Source of the DNA: Macrostomum lignano
Lineage: Eukaryota
Reading direction: 5' to 3'
NCBI GenBank assembly: GCA_002269645.1
Contig: NIVC01000291.1
Location: 1 to 64,000 of the forward strand
DNA: 64,000 nucleotides
Every line of letters begins with the position of its first letter. Position 1 is the first letter of the stretch. The notes under the pieces were generated by a model that was given only the letters and a program-made list of their open reading frames with translations, did not search any database and had not been told where the DNA came from. This document shows, one piece after another, positions 15,801 through 63,365 of this stretch. Both the position numbers and the translations under genes were made by a program.

Positions 15801-16600
15801 TCCATGATTTTTTACATGACGCTTCTATGCTTTTTACATGACGCTTCTATGATTATTTCATGACGCTTCTACGATATCTGCAGGACGCTTCTATGATTGT
15901 TTACATGACGCTTCTATGATTTTTACATGACGCTTCTATGATTTTTTCATGACGCTCCTATGTTTTTTTCATGACGCTTCTATGATTTTTTCATGACGCT
16001 TCTATGATTTTTTACATGACGCTTCTATGATTTTTTACATGACGCTTCCATGATTTTTTACATGACACTTCTATGATTTTTTCATGACGCTTCTATGATT
16101 TTTACATGACGCTTCCATGATTTTTTACATGACACTTCTATGATTTTTTGCATGACGCTTCCCTGATTTTTTACATGACGCTTCTATGATTTTTTACATG
16201 ACGCTTCTATGATTGTTTACATGACGCTTCTATGATTTTTTACATGACGCTTCTATGATTGTTTACATGACGCTTCTATGATTTTTTACATGACGCTTCT
16301 ATGATATTTTCATGACGCTTCTATGATTTTTTACATGACGCTTCTATGATACTTTCATGACGCTTCCACGATTTTTTACATGACGCTTCTATGATTTTTA
16401 CATGATGCTTCTACGATTTCTGCAGGACGCTTCTATGATTTTTTACATGACGCTTCTATGATTTTTACATGATGCTTCTACGATTTCTGCAGGACGCTTC
16501 TATGATTTTTTCATGACGCTCCTATGATTTTTTCATGACGCTTCCATGATTTTTTACATGACGCTTCTATGATTTTTTACATGACGCTTCTATGATTTTT
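9880..16600. repeat. 22-23-bp minisatellite CATGACGCTTCTATGATT(G/T)TTTA, ~6.7 kb
   Basis: About 290 units. Rare variant units recur at offsets of 1511 bp and 646 bp. Confidence 0.98.
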
Positions 16601-16633
16601 TAGTTTTCTTCTTGGTGTTAAAAAGCTTTAATT

Positions 16634-16714
16634 AAAAAAATTCCACTCTCTCAAAATTTGAACCATCGTCCCTGCATTTAGCAGTCAGTCTGTTTACCTC
16701 TAGGCTAGCTCTCA
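16634..16714 (-). pseudogene. tRNA-derived cassette inside A3
   Basis: Minus strand TAGCCTAGAGGT...GACTGCTAAATGCAG...GGTTCAAAT followed by a T-run. It lies at the same position in the element as in A1 and A2. Confidence 0.5.
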
Positions 16715-17194
16715 TCGTTTTGATAACATGAATTTTAGCACTTATAATTATAAGTTTCAAAACTCCAAGCATGGAGTAAATCACACGAGGCAGTTATGAC
16801 ATAATCAATTTCTCAGTCAGTCAGTATCAGTTAACAATATGGTTACGCAATTTAAATCAAGTCTGGTGCTACGCTTCCACACTGCATTTTCAATTCAAGT
16901 CGGAGTTACAATTCAGTTATGATGCAATCTATTTCAGAATCAGAATTCAACCAGTCAGTTTTTTTCTCTAGCATTCTTACAATGCATTTCAAGTCGAAAA
17001 GTTTGCTTGACCTTTGCAAAAAAGCATGTTTTTCGAATATTTAATCGCTTTAACATGGAGCAATTTCTTAGCCAAGATGCATGTACCGTCACGGGAAAAT
17101 TTCTGATCAAACAGTGCAAGTCTCATGAAAATCGGTTAAGCCATTTTTTCTCTAATCGATTACAAGCAAGCAAGATTTTCATTTTTAGTATAAA

Positions 17195-28847: not shown

Positions 28848-30309
28848 CGAGGCCAACTCCTCCGCTGGAGGAGAAAGGGGAAGAACTCCTATCACCGGAA
28901 TTCCATTAAGTGATCTCCATCAGCTGAATCCCATAACCCAACTCAGTTTCAGTAAAAGTCACACGAAGCAGCTTTGACATTGACATAACTATTTCTCAGG
29001 CAGTCAGTATCAGTCTCAATTAAGTGAACATTATAGTTGCGCAATCTATGTAAATCAACCCTCCAATACACAGCGACCCACCCCCTCCAATGCACCGCGG
29101 CATTTGACCCCCCCACCTCTTGAATTTCACTGCGCAGCTAATACACAGGGCTGCCTTTTGAAAGGCACCGATAATAAAGCTGTAAAATTCAAGTGCTCAC
29201 TGTCAACTGAAATTGATGCAAATCAAACTTTAGGAATATGAGTCAGCGTTAGGGTGCGATTGCAGCTTAAATGTTCTGCTATGGCATTCTCTATTAAGAG
29301 CTTAGAGTTCACAGTCAGTCTAAAATTGTGATAATCTAAAGTCTGTGATAGACCGCCACTTTGCGCAAATCATTAATTGAATGAATCACTCTGTAACAGC
29401 TGGTTGGCTACTCATTCTCTGCCAATTCATTGTAAGGCAGTTAAATGTGCGAAAAACTGATTGGCTGCCCGTCAGCTATAGCAGTCATGCAGGACTGTAC
29501 ATCTTAGTGAGAATGGTGGAAAAAGTACCAAAACTACTTTGTATAGCTGCACTGAATTACAACTTCTTGACTTCTTCAAGTACTTATGTTGCTGCGTTCC
29601 TTTCACAGCTAGCTGAATACCCCTACTCGAATTCCTTCACCTCTGTTGAATATAAAAACTAATTCAAAGACATTATTGGGGGGTACGCAGGAAACGATCG
29701 AATAAATGGGATAGTCTCTTTGGCTAAGTACTTGTTAAGTTTAAATTCATGTGAATTTTATGCCTTTCCATTACTTATACATGTTACTAATAGCCTATGA
29801 TTGACAGCCTTGTTTGTATTCTGAATCCTGCGCACCCCGAGTACAGTATGGCATATATTTGTTTTAAGCAATGCATTACAATATAGGGATGCAAGCACAG
29901 GTGGAGAGAAATGGGAAGAGAAAAGGGCAAATAATTATCAAGGTTGTTTTCTAGAGTTGTTTTTTAGACTTGATTGAAAATCTAAATAAGTATTTAGGAG
30001 GCGATCTAAGAGCTACACTGGGAACCTACTTTATAGCATTTGAGCGCGATCATCTTTAACTTAAAAAATAGGATTTAAAATTGAGTGAAAATTATGCAGA
30101 ACGAAATAGAATGTTTAATATAAATAATTACGTATGGATACTTTGTACGTCGAAAATATTCTGAAAAATAAATACAGCAATTGGATCTAAATTGGTAGGA
30201 GCCCGAGCTTTCTTAGAAGCATCCCCTTATACTAAAATATTATATCTGTAATTCATTCAGCAGCTCTGTAAGTGGAACAGTTTTGCCAGTAGTTTATTAT
30301 TCATGTTAC

Positions 30310-31053: not shown

Positions 31054-34000
31054 TTAGTTCTGCTTGCCGATAAGCTGGCGCAGCACGATGTTCCGCGTCC
31101 GTCCGCCTGGAGCCCGAACTTTGACGCCATCGGCACTCCGCGCACGACTCAGAGCCACGTAGAGCTGGCCATGCTGAAAGCAAGCCGTCGTCAGGTCGAC
31201 GGCGTAGGTGCCCAGCGACTGGCCCTGGCTCTTGTGGATGGTCATGGCGAAGCACGGCCGGATCGGGAACTGCAGACGGCGGAAAACGAACGGAACCTCT
31301 GTCGGACTCGGCTCCTGCGGGATCCGCGGGATGAACACCTGCCGCGAACGGTAGACGCCAGTGGTTACCTCCGCTAGCAGGACGTTGTCACGCAGTTCAC
31401 GCAGCAGCAGCCGAGTCCCGTTGCACAGCAGCGGTGGGTCGAGATTCCGCATCATGACGACCGGCATGCCGACCTTCAGCTCCAGTCGGTGATGCGACAT
31501 ACCGCTGGGGTCCAGCCGGTTCAGCAGCTCCGGCGGAAAATTGGTCGCTGCCGTGTCGTCATTCGGAATCGAGTCGACAGATAAGTAGAGTCGGCTCTCA
31601 CCGGGGAAGAGCGCTAAGCAGGCGGCGTTGGCCTCGTCCACCGTCCTGTTGAGTGGCGCCAGGATGCTCCGCTCCGCGAACATCTGGTCACGCTGCGCAC
31701 TCGGCTCAAAGGACGGGTAAACGTGCCGGATGAGCTGCTCAGTGGTTGTGTCCTCGGGCAGAAGGATCTCGCTAGGCAAGGAGACCATGCCCTCAACGTC
31801 CTCTGGCAGCTCCCCGTTGCCAACCTGACGGTGAAAAAGTGGAATGAAATTTTACAATTTTTTCCTTCAATTCGCATGCTTAATGAGAGCATAGAAACTC
31901 CAGAGATTCTCACCTGCATAAGAAAATCCGCGTAGCTTTGGAGAGCCGAGCCGCCCTCCAGCCGCAGATTCCTTGTGAGCTGGTGCTGCCGGAAGTGCGG
32001 CCACAGCACCGACCGATTCAGGCAGGCTTCGATCGTGTTGGCCTGCGTCCCTCCGGGCACAACAGCAAGCAACTGCCGAAAGTCGCCAGCCAGCACCAGC
32101 AGCGCTCCCCGAACGGCTGCCCACCGTGCAGCAAATCCCGCAGAGTCCGCTCGACGATCTCGAGGTCTTTGCGGTGCGTCATCGGAGCCTCGTCCCACAC
32201 GATGAGGCGGGCGTTCCGCAGAATCTCCGCCAATTTGCTCCGCCTGCCGATGGAGCAGAAGGCGCTGTCCTGCCGTACAGCGCAGACGGGGATCTTGAAC
32301 CTGTAGGCAGGTATCGCGAGGATGGTCAATTGTGATGATAAATAAGGGATGACTTTCTGTGCTTAAAAACTAACAGTTTATAAAAATATTTATGCGGACA
32401 CAAAACTCACATCGAGTGGGCGGTCCGACCTCCGGGTAGAATAGTCGCCGCGATGCCCGATGACGCGACGGCAACAGCGATTTGACGTCTTGCTCGAACC
32501 GACTTCAGCAGAAGTGTGAGCAGGAACGTCTTGCCTGTGCCTCCAGGAGCGTCAATGAAATGCAGCCCGCCGCCACCGGCCGTCAGATTGGACTGCACGG
32601 CCTCGAAGACAGCTCGCTGCTCGTCAGTCAGGGTAGCGACCAGCGCATCCACTTCGGACTGCAGCTCAGCAGCTTCATGGGGCGTCGGCAGGCAGTCAGA
32701 AAGAAGCCGAGTCTGGATATTGAAAAGTGGCTGTCATCAGTTAGCAAATAAAGGTAAAAAAAATTAACAGTCAGTGCATAGAAGTGATTTTATTTACCTG
32801 ATCCGGCTCTGCCAGTGGTTGAGGAAGGCCGTAGGCAGACAGCTCGGATCCGCCCATCCGCTCCAGCCGCTTCTGCAGCGACCGCAGCACTTCGGCCATA
32901 GCAGCCTCGGCGCTCAAGCCCTGGTGCAGCAGGTCGCCAGCCATCTCGCGGGAAAACTCCTCCCAGAGCTTCACGGGGTCGCTTGGATCGCCGTGCGCCA
33001 AAATTGCGGCAAAAAGTCGGCGCAGAGCAGCAGGCATCCGCGTCTGGGCAGCTTCGGACAGACACAGCTGCCAGTGCCTGTCGTCTTCCAGCAGTCCGCG
33101 AGCCTGGCAGGCGGCCTTGAAGGTCGGCAGCAGGACTCCATCGACAGTGCGCAGAGCCTCGAACGAAGTCGGGCCGCGCACATTCACCAGCAGCAGGCGC
33201 AGGTAAAAACAGTCGCCCATCCGTGGACTGACTGTGTAGATGCGGCCGATGTTGCTGGTCGTCAGAACATCGGCTGGCTGATCAGCAGCGACTCGGCCGC
33301 GACCTGCGCGATGCCACTGGTGCGCACTTCTGTCCCAGGTGAAGTGCCGGGGCACCTCCTGGTACAGCAGCCCTCGGGCGATATCGTCATGGCGACAAAG
33401 CTGGGCGGGTAAGAATAAGAACAGGAATTAACAGGAAGGAGGAAAAAGTTGAAAAATTGCACTTTTTCTGCAAAACTCACATCGAAGAAGGCGGTCAAAG
33501 TCGTGGCCTTGGGCGTAGCAGCAACAGCCTGAGCCGTCTCGTCTGTGAAGAAGACCCGCTGCTCGTCCTTAAGATGAACCGCGAGCCTGATCACAGGGGG
33601 GTATCGGCTGTGAACCTCAAAGCCCAGGATGGTGTTGACCGCCTCCATTGGACCGATGAACCTGCCCAGTAGGTATTCGTCGATCTCATCGATCTTGTGT
33701 CGCTTTGCGGAAGTCGCAGCAGCAGCAGCAGCAGTCCCAGTCGACGTGGACGGACCGGCGATCGCCAGTGGTCCTTCAGTGGCCGAATCAGCGCTGGCAT
33801 TCGCAGCAGCCGCCGACTCCTTACGGATCTGGTATGCTGCCATGTCGCTACCCTTGGTGATGTACTTCACCACGTACTTGATGGCCCGAACTGTCGCGCA
33901 GATCTCGACATTCAGGTGACAGCGAAACTCGCGCAGCAGCGCTGGGCAGTACGGCACCACCCAGCGGTTGTCAAAGGTGAACATCACCCTCTGACCGCCA

Positions 34001-36683
34001 TGCAGCTTTGCGAGCTTCGTCACCGTGAAGCCGCCCATCTCGACGGATCTGCGGCAGTAATGCGGGTAGCCATCCTCCTCCACCTTCGTGGCGGCCAGGA
34101 ACTCCCTCGGGTAGCGCTTGCTGCACTTGCCTTTCTCCATGCACGCCGCGGCAGAGTTGAGCTGCTGCCCACAGGGACCGTGCAGCATGTTCTCCGCCAC
34201 CAGCTGATGCAGGTCGGCGTCGGCGACAGGGTCCGGGATCTCCGCGCTGATGACGGCGTCGTACTGATCCGGCTTCAGCTTGTTCGCCAGCCACAGCAGC
34301 GCGTGCACGTGGGGAAGACCTGGTTGTGGATAAAATTTATTGATAATTGATCATCAATAATTTTATTGAAATTTACGAAGTTATGGAGCCAACAGTTAAT
34401 GCTACAGTTTAAAGCTTAAAAGTACACTTGCCTCGCTTCTGGTACTCCAGCGAGCAGACTCGAGCCAGAGTATCTCCAAACAGACTCTTAAGCCTGTTTA
34501 AGAAGGCCTTCTTCTTCAGCTCGAACACCCGGGCGGTGATGTCCGGCCGATCGACGGCAGTCTGCCCTGGAAGCAGCTCGGCCAGAATTTCCGGCCACTT
34601 CGGGTTGCATGTCATCGTCAGAAACAGGTCTGGGCGGCCAAAGGCGTGAACATACGCCATGGCATCCTGCTGACGCTCCAGACGGTACCGTGGACCTCCC
34701 ACGTAGCTGGAAGTAAGAATGACACGCTTCCCGACTTCTTCCGGCCTGCCGTCGTCCTCGTGCAGCGCATCGCGGAGACCCCGAAGACTTTCGGACACCA
34801 GATCCGTTTGGTGCTGCCGGATGTACGTAAGTCGCTCGGACTCGATCTTGGCAGCCTGGTCCACCAGGAACTGCTGGAAGAGCCGGCGACCGTACAGCAG
34901 GCTGTTGAACTGGCCTGGTCGCACCTGGATCAAGTAGGCGTAGTATTTCATCATGGTGATGCCTCGATCCTTCTTGAGCCCAATGTGCCAGCCGTCCTCG
35001 CCGTACGGAAGCAGCAGCACGTACTCCAACGGATCGTAGGAGCGATGGGTCTCAGAGATCTCCTGGAGGCCTGTGGATGCAGTTGGGTAATTTAATTCTA
35101 AACTACAGTTCAAAAGCAACCAAAATGTACACCTGAATAACCCAAAACGTTTATTTTATTATCTAACTTTACAATGCAACCCAAATTTTAAGTCTTTTAA
35201 GACGCTTAAAGTACTTACCACCACCTCTCAGACGCAAAACCACGCTCCGCCATTGCGCCTGAACTACGCCATCAGCATCGCCAAGGTCCGTCAGGATGCC
35301 GACCTCACTGCACTCGGGCAAGTTGAAGCGTCGGACATGCTCCCCAGATGGGCGGGCATCGGGGTTGATGACGACCCTGGCGCTCTGCAGCTGCGGGTCG
35401 CTGCGCAGCAAGTCGACTGCGGACTTCAGGCTGCGCACGTAGCTGTTGCAATCATGCAGAACAGCTTGCAGCTCCTGCAGCAAAGTGTCGTTGAGACCTG
35501 CTGTCCATTGCAGTCTGTTCTGCAGCTCTTGGTCCACAAAGAAGACCTGGCAGAACCTGGCCGCATCCCCTGGGTCCGGCAACAGGCTGCCGATCCGATG
35601 GTGCATCTGACCATGGAGGATGAAGCTGGGGTTCCACCCGGGCTGTTCACGCTGCCTGGAACCAAGCGAGGTCATATGGAGCGCGCCGTTATACTTCCTG
35701 ATGTCCTTCAGGAACTGCGAGCTGAACGGATGCTCGCCAGTCAGCAGCCGCTTCAGAACATCAGGCGGGTCTCGGCGCTGCTCCAGGACGGTCTGTCAGT
35801 GTTAGAAAAAAAACTGAAGTAGCTTTTATGCGGAGACGGGCTGCAGCAAATCATGCAATTGTCGATGACTCCATAGGTGGTCAGAGGCTTGATACAGTAC
35901 AGGAGGCATAAATGAGGCAGCAATTCAAGTAAACTAAAACAATAAATATCAACTCACCTTTCCAGCATGGCAGCAAATGCTAGCTGGCTCGTCCGTCCAG
36001 CGTAGCGCGCTGCAGTGAGGGCATTGGCGGTCCATGCGACCGAGAACATGTGGCTGGTGTGCCAGCTCCAGCAGCCTGTGGTAATGAAATAGAGTATTTT
36101 AATCAGGAATTCTTGAAAATCCAGATCCACATGCAGAAAATTTAATAGTCTCAGATTATGAGCTACCACACATAAGAATAGCAGAATAAAATTTTATATA
36201 GGAACCCTACCTGTCTCGGCGCCACTCTGCCTGTGCGTGTACACGGCGGTCGTGGTCCTCAGCGGACTCAGCCGCGCGATACTGGACCTGGCGCTGCCGC
36301 TGCGCCTCCAGGCGATGCAGATGGACTGCCTCCTCCTCGGCTTCACGGCTTTCGACAGCACGCAGCCGGTCGTGGTCGAGCCGATTCTGGCGTTCCACCT
36401 CGCCTTCAGCATCCCGGCTTTCAGCTAAGCGGAGTCGATTGCACTCAAGGCGATGCTGGCGCTGCACTTCGCCTTCGGCCTCACGGCTTCCGGCTGTGCG
36501 CATTCGATTGGACTCGAGGCGATTCTGGCGCTCCACTTCGCCCTCGGCTCTCTCGGCCCTATGCTGCCGCTCCCGCTCAACGCGCGCTGCACGCTCATCG
36601 GGTGTCTCCGACGCCCTGCGCTTCTTGGCATCCGATGCAGCGCGTGTAGAGCGGGAAAGGCTTCCTCGACCACGTTTTGGCAT
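31054..36683 (-). CDS. Helitron Rep/Helicase (HUH endonuclease + Pif1-family helicase), 9 exons, ~1574 aa, one -1 frameshift
   Basis: Exons (minus): 36683-36211, 36075-35958, 35792-35219, 35070-34432, 34319-33481, 33400-32798, 32730-32411, 32300-31914, 31824-31054; all phases are compatible except for one missing base at 32107-32110. Motifs: 23-aa STPR-like repeats; zinc knuckle CPHC...CCHAGK; Rep motifs PDLFLTMTCNPKW, EYQKRGLPHVH, KYVVKYITKG; helicase motifs DAPGGTGKT, WDEAPM, LAGDFRQ, AMTIHKSQG, QLYVALSR. Confidence 0.93.
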
Positions 36684-37930
36684 TATTATAGTAAGCAAAT
36701 AGGGAATAGCAAATGGGCAAAAAAGCAAAAAGCAAATGACAAAAAAATAAGGAAATAGCTCAATCGGAATATTAGACAAATTCTATTCTGATATCGAAGG
36801 AAATGTAACTGAATTGGAATTTCGCGCTATTAAGTAAGAGTTCAGTGTAAGTAAAGGCCCAGTGTACGTGATTTTAGTCAAAAAAATAACTTGAGCCTCC
36901 ACCCCCCCCCGACTCCTCAAATACTGAAATTACTCCAAATGATAGCTGGCTTAAATGTGCGAACGCAATCCCCCAATTTTATCTGAAAGTTAAAAATAAG
37001 GTTACGCAATCTTAATAAACCCTCCAATACACAGCGACCGACCCCCCTCCAATGCAGAGCGGCAGTAAGAAATTGAACTCCTCAACTTTATCTATTACGT
37101 ATCGCAAAAATGAGTACAATCTTTGCAGAAAGTTAAAAGCATGGTTATCGTTTTCTGAATGCTGTGCTTTAAGTTTTCATTTTTAAAGCAAACAACTTAC
37201 ATCTTTGAAACCAGCGTTGCAAGATCTTTCCAGCAATATAAGTCTCTCCTCTCAAATTTTAAAAGTTGAGGAACACTTTGCGTTTAAAACTTCCCAGTTT
37301 AAAGCATTGAATTTTTGTGCGTACATTCACTGCCTTTTCCACTGAGAGGCTCGCAAGTTTATTCATTGAATTTCACAGTTCAACACAGGGTTTCCTAATG
37401 AAAGGCGCTGATAATAAAACCAATTGAATCTCGACCCAGTAGCCATATCGTTGCGCTTCACACCCACCACCCCACGAAATTCATCAATTAAGCCAAATTG
37501 CAGTTGACTAATATCGATCCGTAGCAATTGCCGGTGAGCCAGGGTCCAATTGTACGCATGCAGCCACTTAGAACGCCCCATCCCCCACTGGAGAGTAAAT
37601 GCACTGGCGACATAGGAAAAAGTTGTGGCGTAATCACTCAAAATTCATGCAAATTTTCAGCTCCGAGCAGAAAGAGGGTACAATTAAGATTATCAAAGGT
37701 CAGAATTGCCGTTTTCTGCTTTTTTAGGGATCTTAAAATGTAAAAATAAAAGATTAAAACAGCCTAAAGCCATCCTCGGAAAATTTGCAGTTTTCCCACA
37801 TAAGTTTCAACGCTGACTTGCAAGTATTCTAGGAGGAGTTATCCAACAAACACACACACACACAGACAAACAACGCACCAGTTTTAGTATTAAGATTAAG
37901 ATTAAGAAGAGAGAGAGAGAGAGAAGAGGA

Positions 37931-47196: not shown

Positions 47197-47482
47197 GGCC
47201 CTCATTTAATTGTTTTATAAAGAAAAAAATGTTTATAAAATTATAAAATGTAAAATTGATTAACTTAGTACTTGTGCACAACTTCATAATTTGTTTGCTG
47301 CTCTTTAATAGCTTTAATTTGTCAACCATTGAAGCAGAGAGTCTACCTCCTGCCCAGAGGGCTAGAAAATTAAATTTGAGATTGGTATTGCATTCATAAG
47401 CTAAACTAGAGTCTAGACAGTTGAGTTAAGGATTATTGCTAACCAAGTTTTTTATTCTCTACTCTGACACCCCAACTCATGC

Positions 47483-50400
47483 ATGCGCCTGACGCAATTC
47501 CTTCTGAGTGGCGCTGCCAGCGGTGGCAGCAGCCTGGCGCGCCTGCGCAACTTCGGCATTGTGGCCCACATCGATGCTGGCAAGACGACCACCACAGAGA
47601 GAATCCTGAATGCAGCTGGGGCCATCCAAGCTGTTGGCAGCGTCGACCGCGGCGACACCGTTACCGACTATCTCACACAGGAGAGGCAGCGCGGCATCAC
47701 CATCGTGTCAGCGGCCGTCGCATTCAAGTGGAAGGGCCACCAACTCACCCTCATTGACACCCCCGGCCACGTGGACTTCGCGTTCGAGGTTGAGCGAGCT
47801 CTGTGCGCCCTAGGTAAGTTGAGCTCTCTGACTCAGCTAATTTTTGGTTGCCAGGAAGATAGCATTAAGTAGGTAGGGGTTCAAAACATGCAAGTTTGAT
47901 GAGGATAAGGAGCAGATGCGGGCTCAGGTGGGGTTTGCAGGGAGCAGATGCGGGCTCAGGTGGGGTTTGCAGGGAGCAGATGCGGGCTCAGGTGGGGTTT
48001 GCAGGGAGCAGATGCGTGCTCAGGTGGGGTTTGCAGATAGCAGATGCGGGCTCAGGTGGGGTTTGCAGGGAGCAGATGCGGGCTCAGGTGGGGTTTGCAG
48101 ATAGCAGATGCGGGCTCAGGTGGGGTTTGCAGGGAGCAGATCCGGGCTCAGGTGGGGTTTGCAGGGAGCAGATGCGGGCTCAGGTGAGGTTCGAAGAGTC
48201 ACAAAAAGCTTGATGACTTGCCCCCCAGATGGCGTCGCGGTAGTGCTGGACGCCACCCGAGGCGTGCAGGCGCAGACAGTGTCTGTGGTTCGCCGGGCCC
48301 GCCGCCTCGGCCTTCCCGCCCTGGTGTTCCTCAACAAGCTGGACCTGCTGCCACCCGCCCGCCAGCTGCCCGCCGTCCGCGCCTGCCTCCGCGCCGTGGC
48401 CACCCAGCTGGGACTCGCGCCCGCCCTCATCAACCGGCCGCCCGCGTCCGGGGGCCTCGACAGGCTGCTGCCGCTGCTGGTGGACAGTCAGGATGCGTGA
48501 GTGGCGTCTCTTGCACCTCCGCTACCCTCCCAGATCCTCAGCTGCTGGGCCAGCCTCCCACATCCTCAGCTGCTGGGCCAGCCTCCCAGATCCTCAGTTG
48601 CTTTGCCGCCCTCCCCCAGGGCTGCTGAGCGACCTTCATAATTTTAATCTCCCAACCGCTCGCAGCGCCACCGCTGACTCTGAACTCGCTGACGACCGTC
48701 GCCGCCTTCTGGAGGCGGTCGTCGAGACTGACGACGACTTGGCTGACAAATTTCTGTCCGACTCGCTTGGCGGCAGCATCTCCATGGCAACGGATGTGCT
48801 GCCGGCCCTGGCGCGGGCCACTCGGCGCCTCAGCTTGACGCCAACTCTGTGCGGTTCCGCCAAGCTGGGCGCCGGCATCCCGGAGCTGCTGGACGCCGTG
48901 CTGCAGTTCCTTCCACCGCCTGAGGCGCCTGCTGAGGCGCGCCAAAAGCAGCGACTTGAGGCGCTGGCCTTCAAAACTATTAAAGACCCGGGAAGGGGGC
49001 CGCTAACCTTCTTTCGGTGAGGCCTTTTTGAGTATTTGTGGCTCAGAATTAGTTAATGAGATAACAATGGAAATCATGAGGAAGGAATGGGATGAGAATG
49101 GGAATCAGGAGTAGGGGAAGGGATGAGAATGGGGATCGGAAGGGGGAGATGAGAATGGGGATCGGAAGGGGGAGATGAGAATGGGGATCGGAAGGGGATG
49201 GGAGAAGAATGGGGATAATAGAAAGGAGATGGGATGAGAATGGGGATAATAGAAAGGAGATGGGATGAGAATGTGGATCAGGAGGGGGGATGTGATAAAT
49301 ATGGGGATCAGAAGGAGGGGATGAGAAGGGGGATCAGAAGCCCGAGGGGATGGGATGAGAATGGGGATCAGAAGGGGAGGGGATGAGAATGGGGATCAGA
49401 AGTCCGAGGGGATGGGATGAAAATTCGGATCAGAAGGAGGGAATGGGATGAGGATGGAGATCAGTAGGGGGTGGGAGGAGAATGGGGATGATAAAAAGGA
49501 GAATGGGGATGCTAAAAAGGAGATTAAATGTGAATGGGGATCAGACAAGATGGAATGAGAAGGGTATGGGAATGAAAGATTAAGGGAATTAGGGATTTAA
49601 GGAATTAAAGGAGATTAGAGCAGGGAGGTCATGAGCGGAACTGTTATGTGACCTGTCACTGGCCATGAGCTCAGGCCCAGTTCCCGCCAACCCAGCATTT
49701 TCTCAGGCCGGCTGCAGCCCAAGTCCAGCCTGTTTGTCAGGAGCGGCTCCGGCGCCCAGGCGGCGGCGAATTCGCCGCACAGGTGCGCCCGCGTCTACCG
49801 GCCCTTTGCCGACGAGTTCACCGAGCTGCCGGACGGCGCCGGGCCCGGACAGATTGCGGCCGTCTCGTTCGGACAGTTGGCCGGCTCCGCGGCCGGGGCC
49901 GTCGTCACTGGGGATGTTGTGAGCGACAGGCCGGCCGGGCTAGCGGATGGTGAGGCGGTCTGGCGGAGGGCGAGGCGGTCTGGCGGAGGGTGAGGCGGTC
50001 TGGCGGAGGGTGAGGCGGTCTGGCGTAGGGTGAGGCGGTCTGGCGTAGGGTGACGCGGTCTGGCGTAGAGTGAGACGGTCTGGCGGAGAGTGAGGCGGTC
50101 TGGCGTAGGGTGAGGCGGTCTGGCGGAGAGTGAGGCGGTCTGGCGTAGGGTGACGCGGTCTGGCGGAGGGTGAGGCGGTCTGGCGTAGGGTGAGGCGTTC
50201 TTTCGGTGGGTGAGGCGGTCTGGTAGAGGGCGGAGGAGACTGGTTCGTGGAGGGTGACGCGGATTTGCAGAGGGTGAGACGGGTTCGTGGAGGGTGACGC
50301 GGATTTGCAGAGGGTGAGACGGGTTCGGAGACGGAGGGAGGGGCCCAAAGTATCCAGCTGTAATCCCTGAATCAGCAGGCTCCATAGCAACTGGTTTTCA

Positions 50401-52796
50401 ATCCAGACCCGGGGACAGACGCTGATGTCGCAGCCGACGCTGCTGGTCGCCGCCGCCGCTTGCCGCTGCTGCGCCCGCCGGACCCCGTGGTGTTCGCATC
50501 CGTGGAGGCCGAGTCGCCGGCCTGGGCGAAGCCGCTGGACGAGGCGCTGACCGGCCTGGCGCTGGAGGACCCCGGGCTGAGGCTGCGCACTGACGAGGAG
50601 ACGGGCCAGACTGTGCTGTGCGGCCTCGGAGAGCTGCACCTGCAGGTTCGGGTTCCGCTGAAGGACATCATAGCAACCTGAAGGTTTCCAACCTGAGGAA
50701 GGTTTCCAACCTGAGGAAGGTTTCCAACCTGAGGAAGGTTTCCAACCTGAGGAAGGTTTCCAACCTGAGGAAGGTTTCCAACCTGAGGAAGGTTTCCAAC
50801 CTGAGGAAGGTTTCCAACCTGAGGAAGGTTTCCAACCTGAGGAAGGTTTCCAACCTGAGGAAGGTTTCCAACCTGAGGAAGGTTTCCAACCTGAGGAAGG
50901 TTTCCAACCTGAGGAAGGTTTCCAACCTGAGGAAGGTTTCCAACCTGAGGAAGGTTTCCAACCTGAGGAAGGTTTCCAACCTGAGGAAGGTTTCCAACCT
51001 GAGGAAGGTTTCCAACCTGAGGAAGGTTTCCAACCTGAGGAAGGTTTCCAACCTGAGGAAAATTTCCAACCTAAAGGTCCAACCATTCAATCTTCCCATC
51101 TCAACCTAATGGATCCCATATCAACCTAAACGATCCCATTTCAAACAAAAAATTCCAATTTAACCTCCTAAAGGTTCTCCATCCCATCTCAACTTAAGTT
51201 TGCCTAAGTCTGAGAGTTTCCAGGCTGAAGGTTCCCAGCATCCGATCTCCATCAACTTCGCAGGTAGCGGGTCAGCGACTTCGAGAGCAGCTGGGACCGA
51301 ACGCTTTCCGCCTCGGCCCCGTGACCGTCTCCTACAGGGAGCGCCTGGTTGCCATGGCAACCATTGACAGCTACACGCTACGCACCGAGTCGCACGGCGC
51401 CCCAGTTGAGGTGACGGTGTCGCTGGAGCTGCTGCCGCGGCTGCCAGCAGACGAGGCGGACTCGGCGGCCGAGGCCAACTCCGAGACGGAGGTCGTCTTT
51501 GTGAACAGCGAGGCGCAGAACTGGGGCCAGCTTCCGCCACAGGCGCTTCGGGCTGTTCGCGAGGGCCTCGCCAAAGGACTGCGCGCCGGGCCGCTGGTCC
51601 GCGGCCAGGTCACCAACTGCAGCGTCCGGCTACTGCGGCTGGCGGTCGTCAGGGCCGGGCAGGAGGGGGTGCCGCCGGCCAAGTTCTTGCAACAGGTTGG
51701 CGCTCTGGTGGCTGCTGGGTCTAAGTGTGGATGGCGTGGGTTCCATTGTACATGAGGCAGTAAGACTTCCGATCCTGGGGGATACTCCAGGGTCTCTTGA
51801 TTAGGTCAGACTTCAGGCCTCATGATTGGGTCAGACTTCAGGCCTCATGATTGGGTCAGATTTCAGGCCTCATGATTGTGTCAGATTTCAGGCCTCATGA
51901 TTGGGTCAGACTTCAGGCCTTATGATTAGGTCAGACTTCAGACCTCATGATTGGGCCAGACTTCAGACCTCCTTTTGTGGTTAGACTTCAGGACCTCATG
52001 ATTGGCTGAGACTTCAGGCCTCATGATTGGCTGAGACTTCAGGCCTCATGATTGTGTCAGATTTCAGGCCTCATGATTGGGTCAGATTTCAGGCCTCATG
52101 ATTGGGTCAGATTTCAGGCCTCATGATTGGGTCAGATTTCAGGCCTCATGATTGTGTCAGATTTCAGGCCTCATGATTGTGTCAGACTTTAGGCCTCATG
52201 ATTGGGTCAGATTTCAGGCCTCATGATTGGGTCAGACTTCAGACCTCCTTTTGTGGTGAGACTTCAGGACCTCATGATTGGCTGAGACTTCAGTCTTATG
52301 ATTGGGGTAAGATTTCAGGACTTTTTTATAGGGTGAGAATTCAGGTGATGGGGTGAGACTTCAGGTGATCTAGTGAGACCTCATGAAAGCTTAAACTTCC
52401 ATTATCTCCCCGCCCATCCACCAGGTGACGTCAGCGATTTACTCGGCTGTCCGGCACCGGCTGTCCGCCGACTGCATGCAACTCACCGAGCCGCTGATGC
52501 GACTTCGCGTCGACCTCGCCGAAACCTCGGCGCCGCCGGCTGCCTTCGACGCCCTGCTGACGGAGCTGGCGCGCCGGCACTGCAGCGTCGAGCGGGTCGA
52601 CCGCGGCTGCTCCGGCGGCGGCTTCGATGACATCACAGTGCTGGAGGCCTGCGGTTCCGTGGCTCAGCTGGCCGGTCTGCCCTCAGCTGTCCGGTCGGCC
52701 ACTTCCGGCCACGCCGACCTGCACCTGCAGCTGCACGGCTACCGGGCCGTGTCCGACCAGCAGCAGGCGGTGCGCCGGATTCGATTTGGGGCCTGA
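47483..52796 (+). CDS. GFM2: Mitochondrial elongation factor G2 / ribosome-releasing factor 2, 7 exons, ~780 aa
   Basis: Exons: 47483-47813, 48229-48496, ~48570-49016 (acceptor uncertain), 49696-49949, 50407-50645, 51264-51695, 52425-52796. Motifs: [58 protein letters not shown]. Short Arg-rich, non-acidic N-terminal presequence. The GDTVTD/SAAV..WKG pattern matches EF-G2mt rather than EF-G1mt (recalled from memory). AATAAA at 53422. Confidence 0.88.
47908..48190. repeat. 32-bp minisatellite, GFM2 intron 1
   Basis: GCAGGGAGCAGATGCGGGCTCAGGTGGGGTTT, about 9 copies. Confidence 0.95.
48520..48620. repeat. ~28-bp repeat spanning GFM2 intron 2 and the exon 3 boundary
   Basis: CCTCCCAGATCCTCAGCTGCTGGGCCAG, about 3 copies. 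Confidence 0.8.
49080..49620. repeat. Degenerate purine-rich minisatellite, GFM2 intron 3
   Basis: GGATGAGAATGGGGATCAGAAGG units of about 22-30 bp. Confidence 0.85.
49949..50335. repeat. 20-bp minisatellite, GFM2 intron 4
   Basis: GGTGAGGCGGTCTGGCGGAG units starting exactly at the splice donor. Confidence 0.93.
50681..51075. repeat. Perfect 18-bp minisatellite, GFM2 intron 5
   Basis: AAGGTTTCCAACCTGAGG, about 21 identical copies. Confidence 0.98.
51800..52375. repeat. 25-bp minisatellite, GFM2 intron 6
   Basis: GTCAGATTTCAGGCCTCATGATTGG units. Confidence 0.95.
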
Positions 52797-52819
52797 GCTG
52801 CTGCTGACTGGCCTGGACT

Positions 52820-53175
52820 GACCTTTATTGACCTGATGGGTCAGGGATAACCCAGATTGACCTTTATTGACCTGACGGGTCAGGGATAACCCAGATTGAC
52901 CTTTATTGATTTGATGGGTTTGGGATTACCCAGATTGATCTTTATTGACCTGATGGATCAGGGATAACCTAGATAGGCCTTTAATGACCTGATGAGTCTG
53001 GGATAATCCAGATTAACCTTTATTGACCTAATGGGTCTGGAATAATCCAGATTAACCTTTATTGACCTGATGGAGTTTGGAGGACCTGGATTGATCTTTA
53101 TTGACCTGATGGGTCAAGGATAACCCAGATGGATCTTTATTGTCCTGACGTGCCTGGTATAACCTGGATTGACCT
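52820..53175. repeat. 39-bp minisatellite downstream of the GFM2 stop
   Basis: GACCTTTATTGACCTGATGGGTCAGGGATAACCCAGATT, about 9 copies. Confidence 0.9.
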
Positions 53176-54635: not shown

Positions 54636-57602
54636 TTTTGAAACTTAAACAAAAATATTTTATAGAATGTTATTGAATTTTATAAAATAAATTCCTAGAG
54701 AATACAAATAATGCCTAAAAAATCTTTGACTTTAGGCCTATATATCTATATTTTATATTATTATTAATATTATTACAATAATTAATATCAATTTGTATGT
54801 ATAGGCATTTATGGTAAAAATGTTTTCATTAGGCCCCTAGCCTAGGCTTATGCTAGGGGGTCCAGTGAGAAATTTTTTTTTTCAAAATCCAAATTTTAAT
54901 CAAGCCATATTGTAGCCCTGGGTATTATTAGTGAAATGACACTAGACTTTTAAAAATTGATCAAGTAATAAAAAAGTTATGAAGTTTTTCTTTTAAAAAA
55001 TGGTGTTTTTTTCCTATCTCAAATACACTAAAAACTGTGCCATTTTTGGGCTAAAAAGCATGTTTTTTGCAGTAAAATGTCTGTAACTTTTTTATTTCAT
55101 AACCGATTTTAGTGTTTTAGGTGTTACTTTGTAGATTTTTGTTACCATAACATTTTATAATATTTTTGTACATATATACTGTTCTATATATGTAGATATC
55201 TGGGGATTAAGACAAAAAAAAAGATTTTTTTTCTAGAGTACTATTTTTTGGCTTTATCACAGTATACTTTCTATTAACCTTAATTTATATTACTTTCATG
55301 TCAATGAAATACTTGTATACTATAATTAATAATATTTTTACTTTCTACTATAAGTAGTATGCAAATAGTTGACCATTATTTCCACGAACATGGGTCTTCC
55401 AAAGTACCACTCCAGATGTTTAAAAATTGATGTAGCTCCTGTCAATCGTAATCATCTATCTTCATGCTGAAGTCATTCAAAAGCTTTTTGTAGTCTATCT
55501 GACAAATGTAATGAATAAATGCTTTACTAAATAATGTTACTAAATCATGTACTTTCATGTTTGAAAAGGCCATGCCCGAATTCAGCAATTGAATCTACCT
55601 TTACAGTTTACCTGCATCATTTGATTCATTTACTTGTTCACTGTGTCCACTTTTCAGCACAATAGCTTTTCGTGGTAATCCAGTCAATTTGTCTGCTACC
55701 AATTCATCTGCAGTCAACTCGTCAGCAAATATCTGAATGAGCATTTTGTCTGCTATGCTGGCCTTCTCATTGTACTATGAGTCTACTACAGTACTACAAC
55801 TGTAGCTACTACAGTCAAGCCAGTCAGGCATGATCGAGACAATGTTACAGGGTGGGTTTCAGGGCTTTGACATGAATGTATAGGTCGCATCATTGGCAGT
55901 GTCCAGGGTGTCGGCTGCATTAGCCAGCAGGCAGTCAAGAAAATGCGAGTGTGTGCCTTTTGTCTCCAGTATTACAGTGCCTACAGTGTCAGCAGCATCT
56001 GCACTAGCTATGGGCGGTACGAATCGGCTTGGATGACATGGCCTGGCAGCTAGAGACTAGAGTTGCCAACTGCGCAACAGTTTGCTGGGACAGGACACCA
56101 GTTTGGTGATAGAGTGTTGCATTGGTGACTTGCTCGTAGCCAATTTAACAATCTTAAGGGCAATACACAGTGTGATTAAATTGTGTATGTATATGTACAT
56201 GTATGAGAGTATGACAATCGATTTGTCTGCTCCCGTTTTCATCCCCATCCACTTTATCTGCAAGTACCTAAATTGACTGAGAACCTCTTTAGTCAGCTCA
56301 GCTTTTACTCAGCTGGTACATTTTAGTGCTTTAATATTTTTAATTAGCTTGGCAGAATGCCTTAGTCTGCCTGCAGACACTGAACTAGACGTACTTTGTA
56401 ACCTGTGGGAGGCAGTAACAAAAGTGAAGTAGAAGGTGCAAGACCTGTAGAGGTCGAAGATGCGCGAGGAAGCTGCTGGCCAGGCACTTGTCTTTCCTGT
56501 AGTGGTCCCAGCTGCAACTGTGCCAGAGTTGACTTCCAGCACATCAGTTTGCCAGCCTAGGCCTCCTATTAATATTAATGATATTATAACCTCACTCTCA
56601 TCTTAAATAGGCGCTATATATATATTAGAAAATTCTAGCATACAATGGACCTAAAAATGGTTAAATATTAGATGATTTGCCAAAAAACTTTTCCAAAAGT
56701 TGATTTGCTAAAAACCTAATTAGAAAATGTATATCTACCCAATATATATTAAGCTATATATTACTATTATTAGTAGCTTAATAATATATTAGTAATGTAA
56801 CAAGGGTGTTTTTATACGATATAAAATCCCACTGGTTAGCTACTAGCTGTAACAGGTGTGGTTGCTCTCATTGAAATTATCCTATTGCTGCAACTAGCTA
56901 TTGTAGGGCTACTTTTCTAATTCCTAAAGCTGCCACCAAAGTTGTAACAGGGGTTACTTCTAGTGTTACCAAATATGTACTACTTTCTTACTACTTGATT
57001 TTATTGGTTGTTTCTTGTACTTGTATATTTACTGGTAGCATATGTATTTTTACTAGTAGCATCTGTACTTTTTAGCCTAAGTGGTCTAATGGCATTGTCT
57101 ATCCTATTCCTATATTCCTATTTCAAGATACTAGAATAATTTCAAACTTGAAGCAAGCAGTGGACAATTTGGTTTCCTTCTGATTCTGCTCGTGTATTTA
57201 TACCCCTTTCTCAGTTCGATTTTAAACAAATAAAATTTTATAATATTTATAATATTTTCAATATTATTGATATTATACTCATTAAAAGAAAAATAGCCTA
57301 GTTTCAAATACAATACTTTCTAAGAAAATAAGTGATGCTAAATAAGGCCTATCTCAGTAATAATATTTTAAGGACCTAGTGCTATTAAGTATTATGTATA
57401 TCTTAGTGCTATAATATTATCTTACTGTTTATACTTAGTTTTTCTAAGGGGGCCTATATGTCTAATAGTATCTAAGATAGAATTTCTATGCAAAATCCTA
57501 GACATGTTCTAGCCTATATGTACTAACAAAAACTTGCATACATTTTATATAAAACTTTATTGATCTATCTTTAGGAGATAGATCACTGATAGTAATAGGC
57601 TT

Positions 57603-58100
57603 GATAAGGATAGATCTCTAATGGATCAGGTTCTATATAAATATGCAACCCCTCTCCCTTAAATTATATTAACCATATAATTTACTTTTTTGAGTTTTTG
57701 ACCAAAAATGTAACTTGTCTATGAATAAAATATAGGCCTAAGCAAAAATTAATGTAATTTTTAAGTAAATAGAATAACTGATTGTTTTATTAAGGCTAAA
57801 TGCTTCAATATCTAATTAAAGTTCTATGTCTATATTTTTAAGTAGGCATTTTTGCAACTTACCTTGGCTAAGCCTCTTATTAGCTAGTCAGATTCACCAA
57901 GTTAGCTGGGTGTTATACATATATGAATATGAGGATCTAAATCTTCAATAGATCAAACTAGCAACTGTTTAAACAAAAAAGTTTGGTAAATGTTAGATTA
58001 GTCTTTTTTGTTAATAGCTATTAGCAATAAATAAATTGCATTTTTTCTAGTCTGATTATTAAAGATTTAGATCCTGATCTATTGGAGATCTATCCTTATC
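57603..58100. repeat. Degenerate foldback element
   Basis: 28-bp inverted repeat (2 mismatches) at 57603-57630 and 58073-58100, with a nested inner inverted repeat at ~57935-58075. Confidence 0.5.
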
Positions 58101-60118
58101 TATCAATTATCTATAAATAAAATGTGAAAATAAAAAATTATTTAGTGTCATGAACTAAAAGATTATTGGTTTATTAATATATGCATAGGTTTTTTCTGCT
58201 TTTATACCTTATAATTACAATAAACTGTTTATAGCTGCTTATACAAATTTCATTTGTTTGCATTGATTTATTAAAAAAATATTAAAAATCTCATTAAAAA
58301 ACTTTCAAAATCTCACTGGTATCCTTCCTAAGATGCTTAGTGCTTATAATACTATAATACATTGACTTATTTGACAAATTAAGTTATAAAAATGCTGTGT
58401 ATAGCATGCAATAGGAAGCCTTTTTGGAGATTACACATGTATATCAGTATATGTATAGGATGTTGGAGCCAAATTGAGACTTATTTGCAAAAATGGAAAA
58501 GGCAATATATTTGATATATATTGAAATATTTTAAAATATATATATTTGTTCTTCTGGTCTCTCACTTCTATGGCTCTAGGTTTACTTCAAATATCAATGC
58601 GAGAGCCAAATAACTGAGGTGGTAGATTCAACTGACTTTTCCTGATAATGCAAACACTTGATGGTAACTTACAGACCATTGTATTTGATGGTCACAATCT
58701 TGAGAGTTATCTTACAAAATATAATGTCTAAAATGGAATTCCAAATAAGAAGCTCGTTCAATTCAAGTTATAAGGGGCTCCTAATTATATGGGTGAACTG
58801 AAGGTTCAATCTTTTGTAGAATGTAGGTTGCCTGTTGGTTTAGTTTAGTGAGTCAATTTATCAGTTTTAGTATTTGGGTTAAGACCCTAATTGTAACAAT
58901 CAAAAGTAGTCAAAGGATCGAGGTAGGCTAGAATGGCTAGAAGGGAGAAGAGAGGGTGGAAGAGAGGCAAGCTTCTTGCTTGGTTAACATGAGCTTTTAT
59001 AGTACTTTTCAGTCTTGATCACATTGGATGGTACATAACTGTTTTTCATTGGTTGAGGCTGGGGTAGTGTCCTCAGCTTTTGCTAGTTATAGTGCATTCA
59101 TTGGTTAAAATACATTCAATCTAGATGGGAACTTTCTAGAGCCAAAATGTGTCACTTCAATATAAGTGGTAGCCAAAAGCTATCTTATTAGGCAAGTCTA
59201 TGAGGAGACCATGTCATTTTATATATCTATTTCTAGATATTATTAGCCTTAAGATGTGGCTAGAATTATTGACATGCATCTACAACCTAATCTTATAATT
59301 AATCTGCCATCTCCTTGGTGACAGACTATAGAGGCTGTTCTGGAGCTGCCACTGTCTCGTGGTATTTCTTGTACTTTAATTTGCAATAGTTACATGTATG
59401 CTCAATTAGGCTAACATATTTATCTTGTTCGTATGTACATTCACCCAAATTTATTGATTGCCCCACCCCATATTGCACTCAATCATATTGTACACTCATT
59501 CACTTTTAAATATCGACCTAAAGTATCTCGCTCAAAATATACTCTTTTTGTTTTCATAGCTTATAGCTAAGTGTCTCAATTTCCATATAGTTATTCTAAC
59601 AACCGGAGGCTTTTTGGCATAAAACATTTAAGTGTCTGGTTTTTTGGTCTGCAGCTCAAATGTATCCCAAATATATAGTTTAGAAGGTTTGCATCTAGAC
59701 TAGAAGGGACCAAATCTCCTTTGGCCAGAGCATATTTAGTTTTGCCACTATCCAATTTAGCTAATTGAAAGACATGGTCTTTTTGTTGCTATTTGATCAG
59801 TCCATGGCTTTACTACATCTCAAAGGACCTCCATGTACACCTTGTTCACATTCTGTGTGAAACATCTCTTGAGGTCTTTCAACAAATGCAGGTGCTCTTA
59901 AGAAGTCTGGCACTTATTTCTAGTGCTTCCTATAAGAACTCCTCTACTCCCTTTCTTCTTTAACTATGTGACAACATTGGTATACTATTGAGCTAGGTAA
60001 CCATATCACCTGAATGATCTTTGCAAGGCAGTTCCTGGTGTGGAGTAGGAATAAAATGTGAATAAGTTTTGGTTTGTCTTAATTTGGCTCTAATACCCTA
60101 TATGAGTATGGCACTAGT

Positions 60119-60285
60119 CATGCTTGGGCGCAACCTTGGGATTCACTTGGCCGTTTCTATTGGCAACACACACATGTAAGTCGCTATGGACGGAATAGTA
60201 TTCACGTGACTGTTCTCAGCCAATAGCAACTTACATGTATGTGTTGCCAATAGAAACGGCCAGGTGATTCCCAAGGTTGCGCATG
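60119..60285. mobile_element. 167-bp MITE with ~62-bp TIRs and a 12-bp target-site duplication
   Basis: The arms GCGCAACCTTGGGA(T/A)TCAC(T/C)TGGCCGTTTCTATTGGCAACACA... are near-perfect inverted repeats. Direct repeat TATGGCACTAGT at 60107-60118 and 60286-60297. Confidence 0.85.
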
Positions 60286-60939
60286 TATGGCACTAGTGCT
60301 AGCCATTATTGAGATTAGAGGTTCATGACACCAAGACTGAGTCCTAATATAATTGAATATTACCTCTTAGAATTACACTTGCGCTTCCTGTTATATGGAC
60401 TATTCCTTTTTATTTTCTTAGTAATTCTCTTTGAACTATTTATTTATAATTCTTAATAAATCCATTTTAAATGAAGAAAATATATTTGTTATGAACTGAA
60501 AGTATTTTTTGCACAGAAATAGTGTTCTATTTTTAAAAAAGGTTTTATTTTTGTTATAAATGTGTCCTAACATAACCCTATATATTCAATATAATAGCAA
60601 ATAACCAAACACAAGAACAACTCCAACTTAAAGATAGGTCTGCTCAAAAGACCCTAATACAAGGTTCATAGTAGCATGTAGTCTTACAAAATGTTATTTG
60701 CATAATTTCAAATTAGCAAATTAATAGTTATAGCTTACCAGACTATAGCTTAGAGGGGTTAATAGCTTGCATAACAAAAATTGTAGCATAAGCATCACAT
60801 CTCCATGGTTTTAAGTTTTATAGGGAATTTTATGTATGATAACTTTTAATACATATTGTTTGTTTACCATTGCCGTAGCTAACACTGTTTTCATTGTGCT
60901 AGCAACATTTTCTTGTATGTATTTTCTTAATAACAAAGA

Positions 60940-60958
60940 ACTACATTGACTCTTGCAG
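60940..60958 (+). promoter_or_regulatory. 3' splice acceptor directly before Rap2 codon 2 (candidate trans-splice site)
   Basis: TACATTGACTCTTGCAG|AAG GAG TAC; there is no in-frame ATG adjacent. Confidence 0.7.
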
Positions 60959-62272
60959 AAGGAGTACAAAGTTGTTGTCCTGGGCAGCGGAGGCGTGGGC
61001 AAGAGCGCCCTAACTGTGAAGTTTGTGTCCGGAAATTTTGTGGAGAAATATGATCCTACGATTGAGGACTTCTACAAAAAGCATATCCGGTGAGTGAGTG
61101 GGTTTTATGACATTGTGAGACTGATGAAAAAGTCAAATTTATTTCAATACTGAGCACTTCAAGGTGACTCTGAGCAGTGTTCTGGGGGGGGGGGCTTCAA
61201 ACTGAAGGCAGCAGGATTCTAAGGGCAAGGTAGAGACGGGACTCCAAGGATTGGCAGCGTGACTCCAAAAATCTGGCAGCGTGACTCCAAAAATCTGGCA
61301 GCGTGACTCCAAAAATCTGGCAGCGGGACTTCAAGAGTCAGATAGCGGAACTCCAATGGCTTGGCAGCGGGACTCCAAGAGGAAGACAGTGGGACTCCGA
61401 GCAAGGCAGTGGGACTCCAAGGGCTTGGCAGTTGGACTCTTAAGACCAAGACAGTGGGATTCCGAGCAAGGCAGTGAGACTCCAAGAGCAAGGCAGTGAG
61501 ACTCCAAGAGCAAGGCAGTGAGACTCCAAGAGCAAGGCAGTGAGACTCCAAGAGCAAGGCAGTGAGACTCCAAGAGCAAGGCAGTGAGACTCCAAGAGCA
61601 AGGCAGTGAGACTCCAAGAGCAAGGCAGTGAGACTCCAAGAGCAAGGCAGTGAGACTCCAAGAGCAAGGCAGTGAGACTCCAAGAGCAAGGCAGTGAGAC
61701 TCCAAGAGCAAGGCAGTGAGACTCCGAGAGCAAGGCAGTGAGACTCCGAGAGCAAGGCAGTGGGACTCCGAGCAAGGCAGTGGGACTCCGAGCAAGGGTC
61801 CCTCAGCTGCAGACCCTCTGAATCAGTGCTCGGCTGCAACGCGGCCCTCCCCACCTCGGCCAGGGTGGACCAGCAGCCCGCGGTGCTGGAGATTCTGGAC
61901 ACGGCTGGCACCGAGCAGTTCACCTCCATGCGCGACCTGTACATCAAGAACGGCCAGGGCTTCGTGGTGCTGTTCAGCGTCACCTCCATGCAGACCTTCC
62001 GCGACATCCAGCAGCTGCGTGAGCAGATCTCCCGGGTGAAGAACCAGCCCCGCTGCCCCATCGTGCTGGTTGGCAACAAGGCCGATCTGGCCGAGCTCCG
62101 CCAGGTATCTGGGCAGGACGCCCTTGCGCTGGCCGAGCAGTGGGGCTGTGCCTACCTGGAGACCTCGGCCAAGACCGGCCACAATGTTGAAGAAGTCTTC
62201 CTCGAGGTTGTCAACGAGATGACGGCCGCTGCCACCAAGCCGCCTTCGCGCGGCTGCTGTCGCCTGATGTGA
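60959..62272 (+). CDS. RAP2: Rap2-like Ras-family small GTPase (initiator Met not in these exons), 179 aa + Met
   Basis: Exons 60959-61089 and 61864-62272 (GT-AG, phase 2). Sequence [16 protein letters not shown], effector YDPTIEDFY (Rap2-type FY), DTAGTEQ (Rap Thr61), NKAD, ETSAK, C-terminal CCRLM CaaX. Confidence 0.92.
61240..61800. repeat. 22-bp minisatellite, Rap2 intron
   Basis: GCAGTGAGACTCCAAGAGCAAG and related GACTCCAAAAATCTGGCAGCGT units. Confidence 0.95.
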
Positions 62273-62580
62273 CTGCCTGGCGTGACCGGCTCTGCATGAC
62301 CATCTTTGTGTATGACTGGCTCTGCATGACCATCTTTGTGTATGACTGGCTCTGCATGACCATATTTGTGTATGACTGGCTCTGCATGACCATTTTTGTG
62401 TATGACTGGCTCTGCATGACCATCTTTGTGTATTACTGGCTCTGCATGACCATCTTTGTGTATGACTGCTTCTGCATGACCATCTTTGTGTATGACTGGC
62501 TCTGCATGACCATCTTTGTGTATGACTGGCTCTGCATGACATCTTTGTGTATGACTGGCTCTGCATGATCATCTTTGTAT
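62270..62580. repeat. 30-bp minisatellite beginning at the Rap2 stop codon
   Basis: ATGACTGGCTCTGCATGACCATCTTTGTGT, about 10 copies. Confidence 0.95.
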
Positions 62581-63167: not shown

Positions 63168-63365
63168 ACACTGATCATAAGTCCCAGTACACTGATCCCA
63201 AGTCCCAGTACACTGATCCCAAGTCCCAGTACACTGATCATAAGTCCCAGTACACTGATCATAAGTCCCAGTACACTGATCATAAGTCCCAGTACACTAA
63301 TCATAAGTCCCAATACACTGATCATAAGTCCCAGTACACTAATCATAAGTCCCAGGATCCCAAGT
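63168..63365. repeat. 21-bp minisatellite
   Basis: CTGATCATAAGTCCCAGTACA, about 9 copies. Confidence 0.93.

Follow-up and report, generated by a model that had tools for sequence, protein, structure and literature searches.

The start codon of a Rap2-like GTPase gene in Macrostomum lignano is very likely supplied by the spliced leader

Flatworm spliced leaders (SLs) can end in AUG, and this 3'-terminal triplet can act as the initiator methionine of the mRNAs that receive the leader. The case was made by Cheng et al. (2006, J Biol Chem 281:733), whose work we take as it is cited in PMC9851317, PMC12582326, and PMC3510090. In Schistosoma mansoni, the SL AUG is in frame in 28% of trans-spliced transcripts and is required by more than 40 cDNAs (PMC9851317). 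In Echinococcus, several cDNAs require the SL AUG for their conserved N-termini, and this usage is conserved across orthologues (PMC3510090). The slORFs of nematodes, Oikopleura, and trypanosomes (PMC9851317) also obtain an initiation codon from the leader. Macrostomum lignano has a single 35-nt SL, CGGTCTCTTACTGCGAAGACTCAATTTATTGCATG, which ends in ATG (...TTGCATG) and is followed by GTAAG in the SL gene; 30 to 39% of the genes are trans-spliced (PMC8629364, PMC5730564). The motif most enriched at the trans-splice acceptors of this species is [T/C]TNCAG, seen at only 44% of the sites in the motif survey (PMC8629364). Another Macrostomum genome paper noted that the SL probably includes the final ATG as a translation start codon (PMC10468722).

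Here we describe a Rap2-like gene of M. lignano whose mRNA is very likely SL trans-spliced, with the SL AUG as its start codon. The arrangement resembles that in S. mansoni and S. japonicum, where the leader has a terminal AUG, the first conserved codon follows the acceptor directly and in frame, and the genome provides no start codon, leaving the SL Met as the sole means of completing the conserved N-terminus. However, Schistosoma is a parasite in which AUG use has been shown experimentally, whereas M. lignano is a free-living macrostomorph, the gene is a different one, and we infer AUG use. As in the SL cDNAs of Echinococcus granulosus, the SL AUG would be needed for the N-terminus to match conserved orthologues; there the evidence consists of full-length SL cDNAs, whereas for Rap2 it comes from the genome sequence, the annotation, and traces of RNA-seq polishing in the assembly. 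The slORFs mostly start at a near-cognate NUG inside the leader and often open new or alternative frames, in contrast to the canonical terminal AUG and the main conserved frame that Rap2 would use. The mechanism itself has been established since 2006, and Rap2 is a new example: our literature search found no paper that names Rap2 as a user of the SL AUG, and the paper texts and supplements that we searched held no mention of Mlig009228, Mlig023605, or Mlig011062.

The gene is GenBank BOX15_Mlig009228g1, located at 60959-62272 on contig NIVC01000291.1 of assembly GCA_002269645.1 (Mlig_3_7). It lies near the end of the window, by which we mean the whole stretch of DNA analysed, the first 64,000 nucleotides of the contig. 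The features that matter for the argument are as follows.

47478-47485, plus strand: start of an EF-G2 / ribosome-releasing-factor-2-like gene (gene 47486-52796), reading caTGCATG and then CGC
60947-60949, plus strand: in-frame TGA stop three codons 5' of the first coding codon, closing the genomic frame
60953-60958, plus strand: candidate trans-splice acceptor TTGCAG, supported by its motif fit, the annotated start at the next base, and SL bases in sister copies
60959-61089, plus strand: coding exon 1, codons 2-45, ending in KKHI and the first two bases of R45; holds the P-loop and switch I
61090-61863, plus strand: cis intron, GTGAGT...CCAG, with 22/44-bp minisatellites within it (61237-61797)
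61864-62272, plus strand: coding exon 2, opening with the third base of codon 45 and closing with the TGA stop (62270-62272); holds SAK and the CaaX box CRLM
62283-62578, plus strand: 30-bp tandem repeat, 9.9 copies, directly 3' of the Rap2 stop, presumed 3' UTR

A first-pass annotation, made without knowledge of the source of the DNA, had pointed to a TTGCAG followed by AAG GAG TAC AAA with no adjacent ATG, and had proposed a platyhelminth source; the DNA is indeed from M. lignano, and the arrangement is present at 60953-60970. The plus strand at 60940-60970 reads actacattgactcttgcAG followed by AAG GAG TAC AAA GTT, and over a longer span it reads acattgactcttgcAG followed by AAG GAG TAC AAA GTT GTT GTC CTG GGC AGC GGA GGC GTG GGC AAG AGC. 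The acceptor AG occupies 60957-60958, and the exon begins at 60959. Upstream of this point, the in-frame codons are CAG, TTG, and CTC, then the TGA at 60947-60949; there is no ATG. The hexamer TTGCAG matches the species motif [T/C]TNCAG, which the window contains at only 294 of its 128,000 strand positions. At this frequency, a motif ending exactly at the boundary between codons 1 and 2 of a conserved protein would be a coincidence of about 0.2%.

The open frame encodes a Rap2-like GTPase. Exons 60959-61089 and 61864-62272 (the exon 1 donor is CG + GTGAGT) join to 540 nt, and their translation is identical to GenBank PAA86187.1, which is annotated as 5'-partial and starts at K exactly at the acceptor (60959). 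With the SL methionine added, the protein has 180 residues and ends in ...GCCRLM-stop, a CaaX box and predicted prenylation site. Pfam Ras (PF00071) is matched over residues 5-164 with 188.8 bits (Met added), and the G1-G5 motifs, including SAK, are all found. The best match to a solved structure is human RAP2A (1KAO; E=1.4e-70), aligned without gaps over residues 1-165, and the score of 239.6 bits for RAP2A exceeds the 217.8 bits for Rap1. The alignment to RAP2A and RAP1B (YDPTIEDFY, DTAGTEQF) shows the Rap2-type Phe39 (Ser39 in Rap1) and Thr61. The protein shares with human RAP2A (PDB 1KAO/2RAP/3RAP) the P-loop GSGGVGKS, Phe39, Thr61 in DTAGTEQF, NKxD, SAK, and a CaaX box; it differs in its C-terminus, CCRLM, and in that its start codon is absent from the gene. 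The top match in the protein collection is BOX15_Mlig023605g1, partial, also from M. lignano, with 99% identity. The closest named animal relatives are Rap-2a and Rap-2c proteins with 63-69% identity, those of molluscs reaching 66-69%, and the mollusc orthologues begin with MKEYK.

The earlier claim that exactly one codon is missing, in phase 0, agrees with this alignment: once the methionine is added, it pairs with Met1 of RAP2A and the two proteins run one to one from residue 1 (MKEYK in our query, MREYK in RAP2A). Only the Met codon is absent. The next in-frame Met, and the first in-frame AUG in the genome, is codon 67, past the G1-G3 motifs, so no full-length GTPase can be made without the leader. 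The statement that the gene is untranslatable without a leader thus holds for the full-length GTPase.

One may ask whether this copy is translated into the full protein at all, rather than being a decaying duplicate, or a gene read from a near-cognate start (TTG at 60953) or from Met67. The genome of M. lignano is recently polyploid and rich in redundant copies, and two UniProt models from the older ML2 assembly, P0122 and P0123, start at Met67. Still, we regard this as extremely improbable. The Rap2 frame is intact, dN/dS against the paralog is 0.17, the protein differs from its homeolog by one amino acid, and the acceptor in the window is intact and matches the consensus, while a product started at Met67 would miss G1-G3. 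Judged from its sequence, the gene is under purifying selection. As part of the SL trans-splicing explanation as a whole, the locus is very likely a functional Rap2-like small GTPase gene with its 5' end at 60959.

How the deposited gene models were made bears on what they can tell us. The published GenBank annotation is RNA-seq-based; transcripts were cut at peaks of SL reads, and reading frames were then called with TransDecoder. All five Rap2 copies that we compared, i.e., the window gene (Rap2-A), its homeolog (L001), and three copies of the paralog Rap2-B (L003-L005; 76-77% identity to Rap2-A), are deposited as 5'-partial proteins starting at K, and in each the gene is annotated as starting immediately after the acceptor. 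A transcript extending further upstream would meet the in-frame TGA, which would lead to a call from Met67, as in the older UniProt models P0122 and P0123. The pipeline allowed trimmed SL reads to multi-map; therefore the annotated start, like the traces described below, marks the junction for the gene family and not necessarily for the copy in the window. We infer that the window copy itself is trans-spliced.

The sister copies carry a further trace of the leader. The three nucleotides before AAG differ among the Rap2 copies as follows.

Window copy (Rap2-A): CAG
L004 (Rap2-B): CAG
L001 (Rap2-A homeolog): CTG
L003 (Rap2-B): CTG
L005 (Rap2-B): ATG

All of the changes run toward the ...CATG of the leader. 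The flanks of L003 and L005 are identical at 112 of 112 bases upstream and 110 of 110 downstream. Counting two neighbouring genes along with Rap2, bases of the SL end (CTG, ATG, or GCATG) replace CAG in six of nine copies. Mlig_3_7 was polished by Pilon with RNA-seq reads, and end-to-end STAR alignment has been used in M. lignano transcriptome work. Under such alignment, reads that start with a few leader bases would be made to run through the acceptor, where they could override the DNA sequence during polishing. The same PacBio reads underlie the older ML2 assembly, for which we know of no RNA-seq polishing step. An ML2-derived Rap2 paralog protein reads CSFQ + KEYK (ttc CAG), for the haplotype that is shown as CTG/ATG in Mlig_3_7, and for two imprinted genes, the Rap2 paralog and the EF-G2-like gene, ML2 still reads CAG. 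The imprint may be regarded as an accidental and indirect RNA trace, according to which the mRNAs of both Rap2 paralogs would read ...GCAUG + AAGGA. We found no paper describing such a polishing imprint of SL bases in our literature search.

It is highly improbable that the variants CTG, ATG, and GCATG are real genomic alleles instead of polishing artefacts. If they were, SL bases would have been written back into the genome, e.g., by repair templated on trans-spliced mRNA. Put another way, very recent duplicates would alternate between having the start codon in the genome and receiving it from the SL, with genomic ATGs in the Rap2-B copy L005 and in both EF-G2 copies. We looked for polishing artefacts at the cis-splice junctions of Rap2 as well. 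Both Rap2-A copies are free of them, and the donors of the paralog are normal; the paralog intron-1 acceptors were covered for some of the copies. None would be expected at cis junctions if reads there were aligned properly, so this check does not discriminate. We also counted k-mers of the SL 3' end (TGCATG and longer) in the M. lignano sequence examined; they are mildly enriched, but we rejected the measure because tandem repeats dominate the counts.

The imprint also bears on where exactly the leader is joined. The start of the exon forms CAGAAG, a NAGNAG-type tandem acceptor with a second AG 3 nt downstream, and if trans-splicing occurred mainly there, the mRNA would read SL-AUG + GAG UAC AAA and the protein would start M-E-Y-K. 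This would preserve the frame, and AAG + GA(G/A) is kept in all five copies. However, the annotation places the 5' ends in front of AAG rather than behind it, the SL imprints replace the three nucleotides before AAG while AAG is changed to ATG in no copy, and orthologues retain a residue between M and E. We therefore consider predominant use of the second AG very unlikely, though a minor M-EYK isoform could arise through it. As far as the sequence can tell, the imprint would set the junction before AAG.

Another way to obtain the start codon is from an upstream exon that ends in ATG and is cis-spliced to the acceptor, and the first-pass annotation had itself suggested ATG + GTAAC at 58661 as a candidate. 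In animals, an intron sometimes separates the start codon from codon 2; eight ATG-GT sites occur in the 8.2-kb stretch that separates the Rap2 acceptor from the upstream gene; and in one gene model from ML2, P0126, an upstream exon is spliced onto this same acceptor of a paralog copy. However, eight sites are no more than expected by chance (9.8 +/- 2.8 in shuffles), and none of them has the GT[AG]AG donor of the species. The suggested site at 58661 does not stand up: besides its donor, it lies inside a 638-bp insertion (58522-59159) that is missing in the homeolog. The three paralog copies have no ATG-GT within 3 kb upstream, no such exon appears in the RNA-seq-based model of any of the five copies, and the paralogs share no conserved sequence upstream except for a mobile element. 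Altogether, a cis-spliced donor of the start codon is highly improbable, and an SL-donated AUG remains the preferred reading.

The upstream region has a history of its own. The gap between the EF-G2-like gene and Rap2, which lie on the same strand and might belong to one operon, shrinks to 4.9 kb in the homeolog, and two stretches in it, 54845-57674 and 58522-59159, are absent from the homeologous contig and are probably recent insertions. A palindromic element of about 170 bp is found at 60118-60289, with arms GGCCGTTTCTATTGGCAACACACA at 60149-60172 (plus) and 60238-60261 (minus) and with 9-bp direct repeats on its flanks. Each Rap2 paralog copy is preceded, at a distance of 345-515 bp, by a single element 88-92% identical to the one in the window; another, inverted and differently placed, is present in the homeolog. 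We had considered this block (about 170 bp, 91% between paralogs) as a conserved 5' exon or promoter but rejected the idea: the copies are bordered by different 9-bp direct repeats and differ in site and orientation, which identifies the block as a mobile element. At least three independent insertions of the palindrome lie in the 1 kb preceding Rap2 genes, and the roughly 170 kb examined contain no further copy. The element looks like a MITE that prefers Rap2 promoter regions.

Repeats are also common elsewhere in the window. Minisatellites lie around and inside genes (50674-51126, 52819-53175, 61237-61797, 62283-62578, and 63168-63355), including a 39-bp unit repeated 9 times just 3' of the EF-G2 stop, 22/44-bp units repeated 20 times in the Rap2 intron, a 30-bp unit repeated 10 times just 3' of the Rap2 stop, and a separate 21-bp unit repeated 9 times. 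An 18-bp repeat in an EF-G2 intron gives rise to long spurious open reading frames on both strands (EGFQPE repeats on the plus strand). Identical motif hits at regular spacing, such as TTGCAG about every 1,175 bp from 21173 to 28151, together with a constant skew in base composition, suggest that about 20500-29300 and about 10000-17000 are long-period tandem arrays, with periods beyond the 500-bp limit of the tandem-repeat tool. A Helitron-like transposon occupies 31054-36779 on the minus strand (GC 55-58%), with its coding region split into several open frames; Helitron_like_N matches at 34409-35119 with 178.8 bits, and the C-terminus of a Pif1-type helicase lies at 31054-31788. At gathering thresholds, Rfam matched nothing in the window, which therefore contains neither an SL RNA gene nor any other known RNA.

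We examined the neighbouring genes for the same imprint. The mitochondrial EF-G2-like gene upstream (BOX15_Mlig017841g1, 747 aa, "partial") starts RLTQFLL, and its homeolog (L006 2993-3000) reads cattgATG and then CGC; both deposited proteins start at R and are flagged partial. Before looking at ML2, we predicted that the true sequence is cattgCAG, which would yield PNSLQ before the R. The M. lignano EF-G2-like protein was retrieved with a full-length approximate query, and the ML2-derived UniProt proteins indeed read PNSLQ + RLTQ, that is, ccc aac tca TTG CAG and then CGC. The ATG at 47483-47485 in the assembly thus appears to be the 3' end of the SL, written in by RNA-seq polishing. The EF-G2-like gene would be a second gene in which the SL AUG stands in frame before codon 2.

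On the minus strand beyond the end of the window lies a TauD/GBBH-like gene (L002 18491-18500, about 69449-69458 of the contig). The copy here has an intact acceptor, gattttgcAG + CC (TTGCAG), and the homeolog (L001 17403-17412) reads gatttGCATG + CC (TTGCATG); the flanks of this site are identical between the two contigs at 110 of 110 bases on each side. In this gene the SL AUG does not match the coding frame (ATG CCC GCC GCT CCC ACC CGC TGA), so the "partial" coding sequence is an artefact of the open frame; translation probably begins at a Met further downstream. A 5'-partial annotation alone is thus no proof that the SL AUG is used.

For Rap2, we propose the following course of events. The pre-mRNA would start at an upstream (unmapped) promoter, and the spliceosome would join the 35-nt leader (...AAUUUAUUGCAUG, donor GUAAG) to TTGCAG at 60958/60959, so that the leader's 3' part, ...CAATTTATTGCATG, would abut 60959 and the upstream outron would be discarded. 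The expected mRNA junction is ...TTGCATG joined to AAGGAGTAC. The last three bases of the leader, AUG, would stand directly before AAG GAG UAC AAA as the initiator codon of the 180-residue protein, and ribosomes would start there. From the DNA alone, the first-pass annotation had expected a flatworm leader ending in ...GCATG, and the published M. lignano SL does end in ...TTGCATG. Its central suggestion, that the gene is SL trans-spliced, gains strong support from this leader, from the annotated 5' end at 60959, and from the SL bases in the sister copies, and is very probably correct. An exact look-up of six full-length forms of the expected SL-Met products (M-KEYK/M-EYK) in a collection of 15 billion proteins returned none.

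These results have consequences for the Mlig_3_7 assembly. RNA-seq polishing appears, from comparison of the sequences, to have overwritten trans-splice acceptors with leader bases in six of the nine gene copies examined, which makes false ATG codons and destroys AG acceptors. This could explain why the acceptor motif is present at only 44% of published trans-splice sites, and the overwriting is possibly of more use to users of the reference genome than the Rap2 case itself.

Use of the SL AUG would explain both the "partial" deposits and the Met67 truncation in UniProt. Rap2 and the mitochondrial EF-G2-like gene 13 kb upstream would join the genes that rely on the AUG of the leader. As cases from a basal, free-living flatworm, they would extend a phenomenon that has been documented mainly in parasites.
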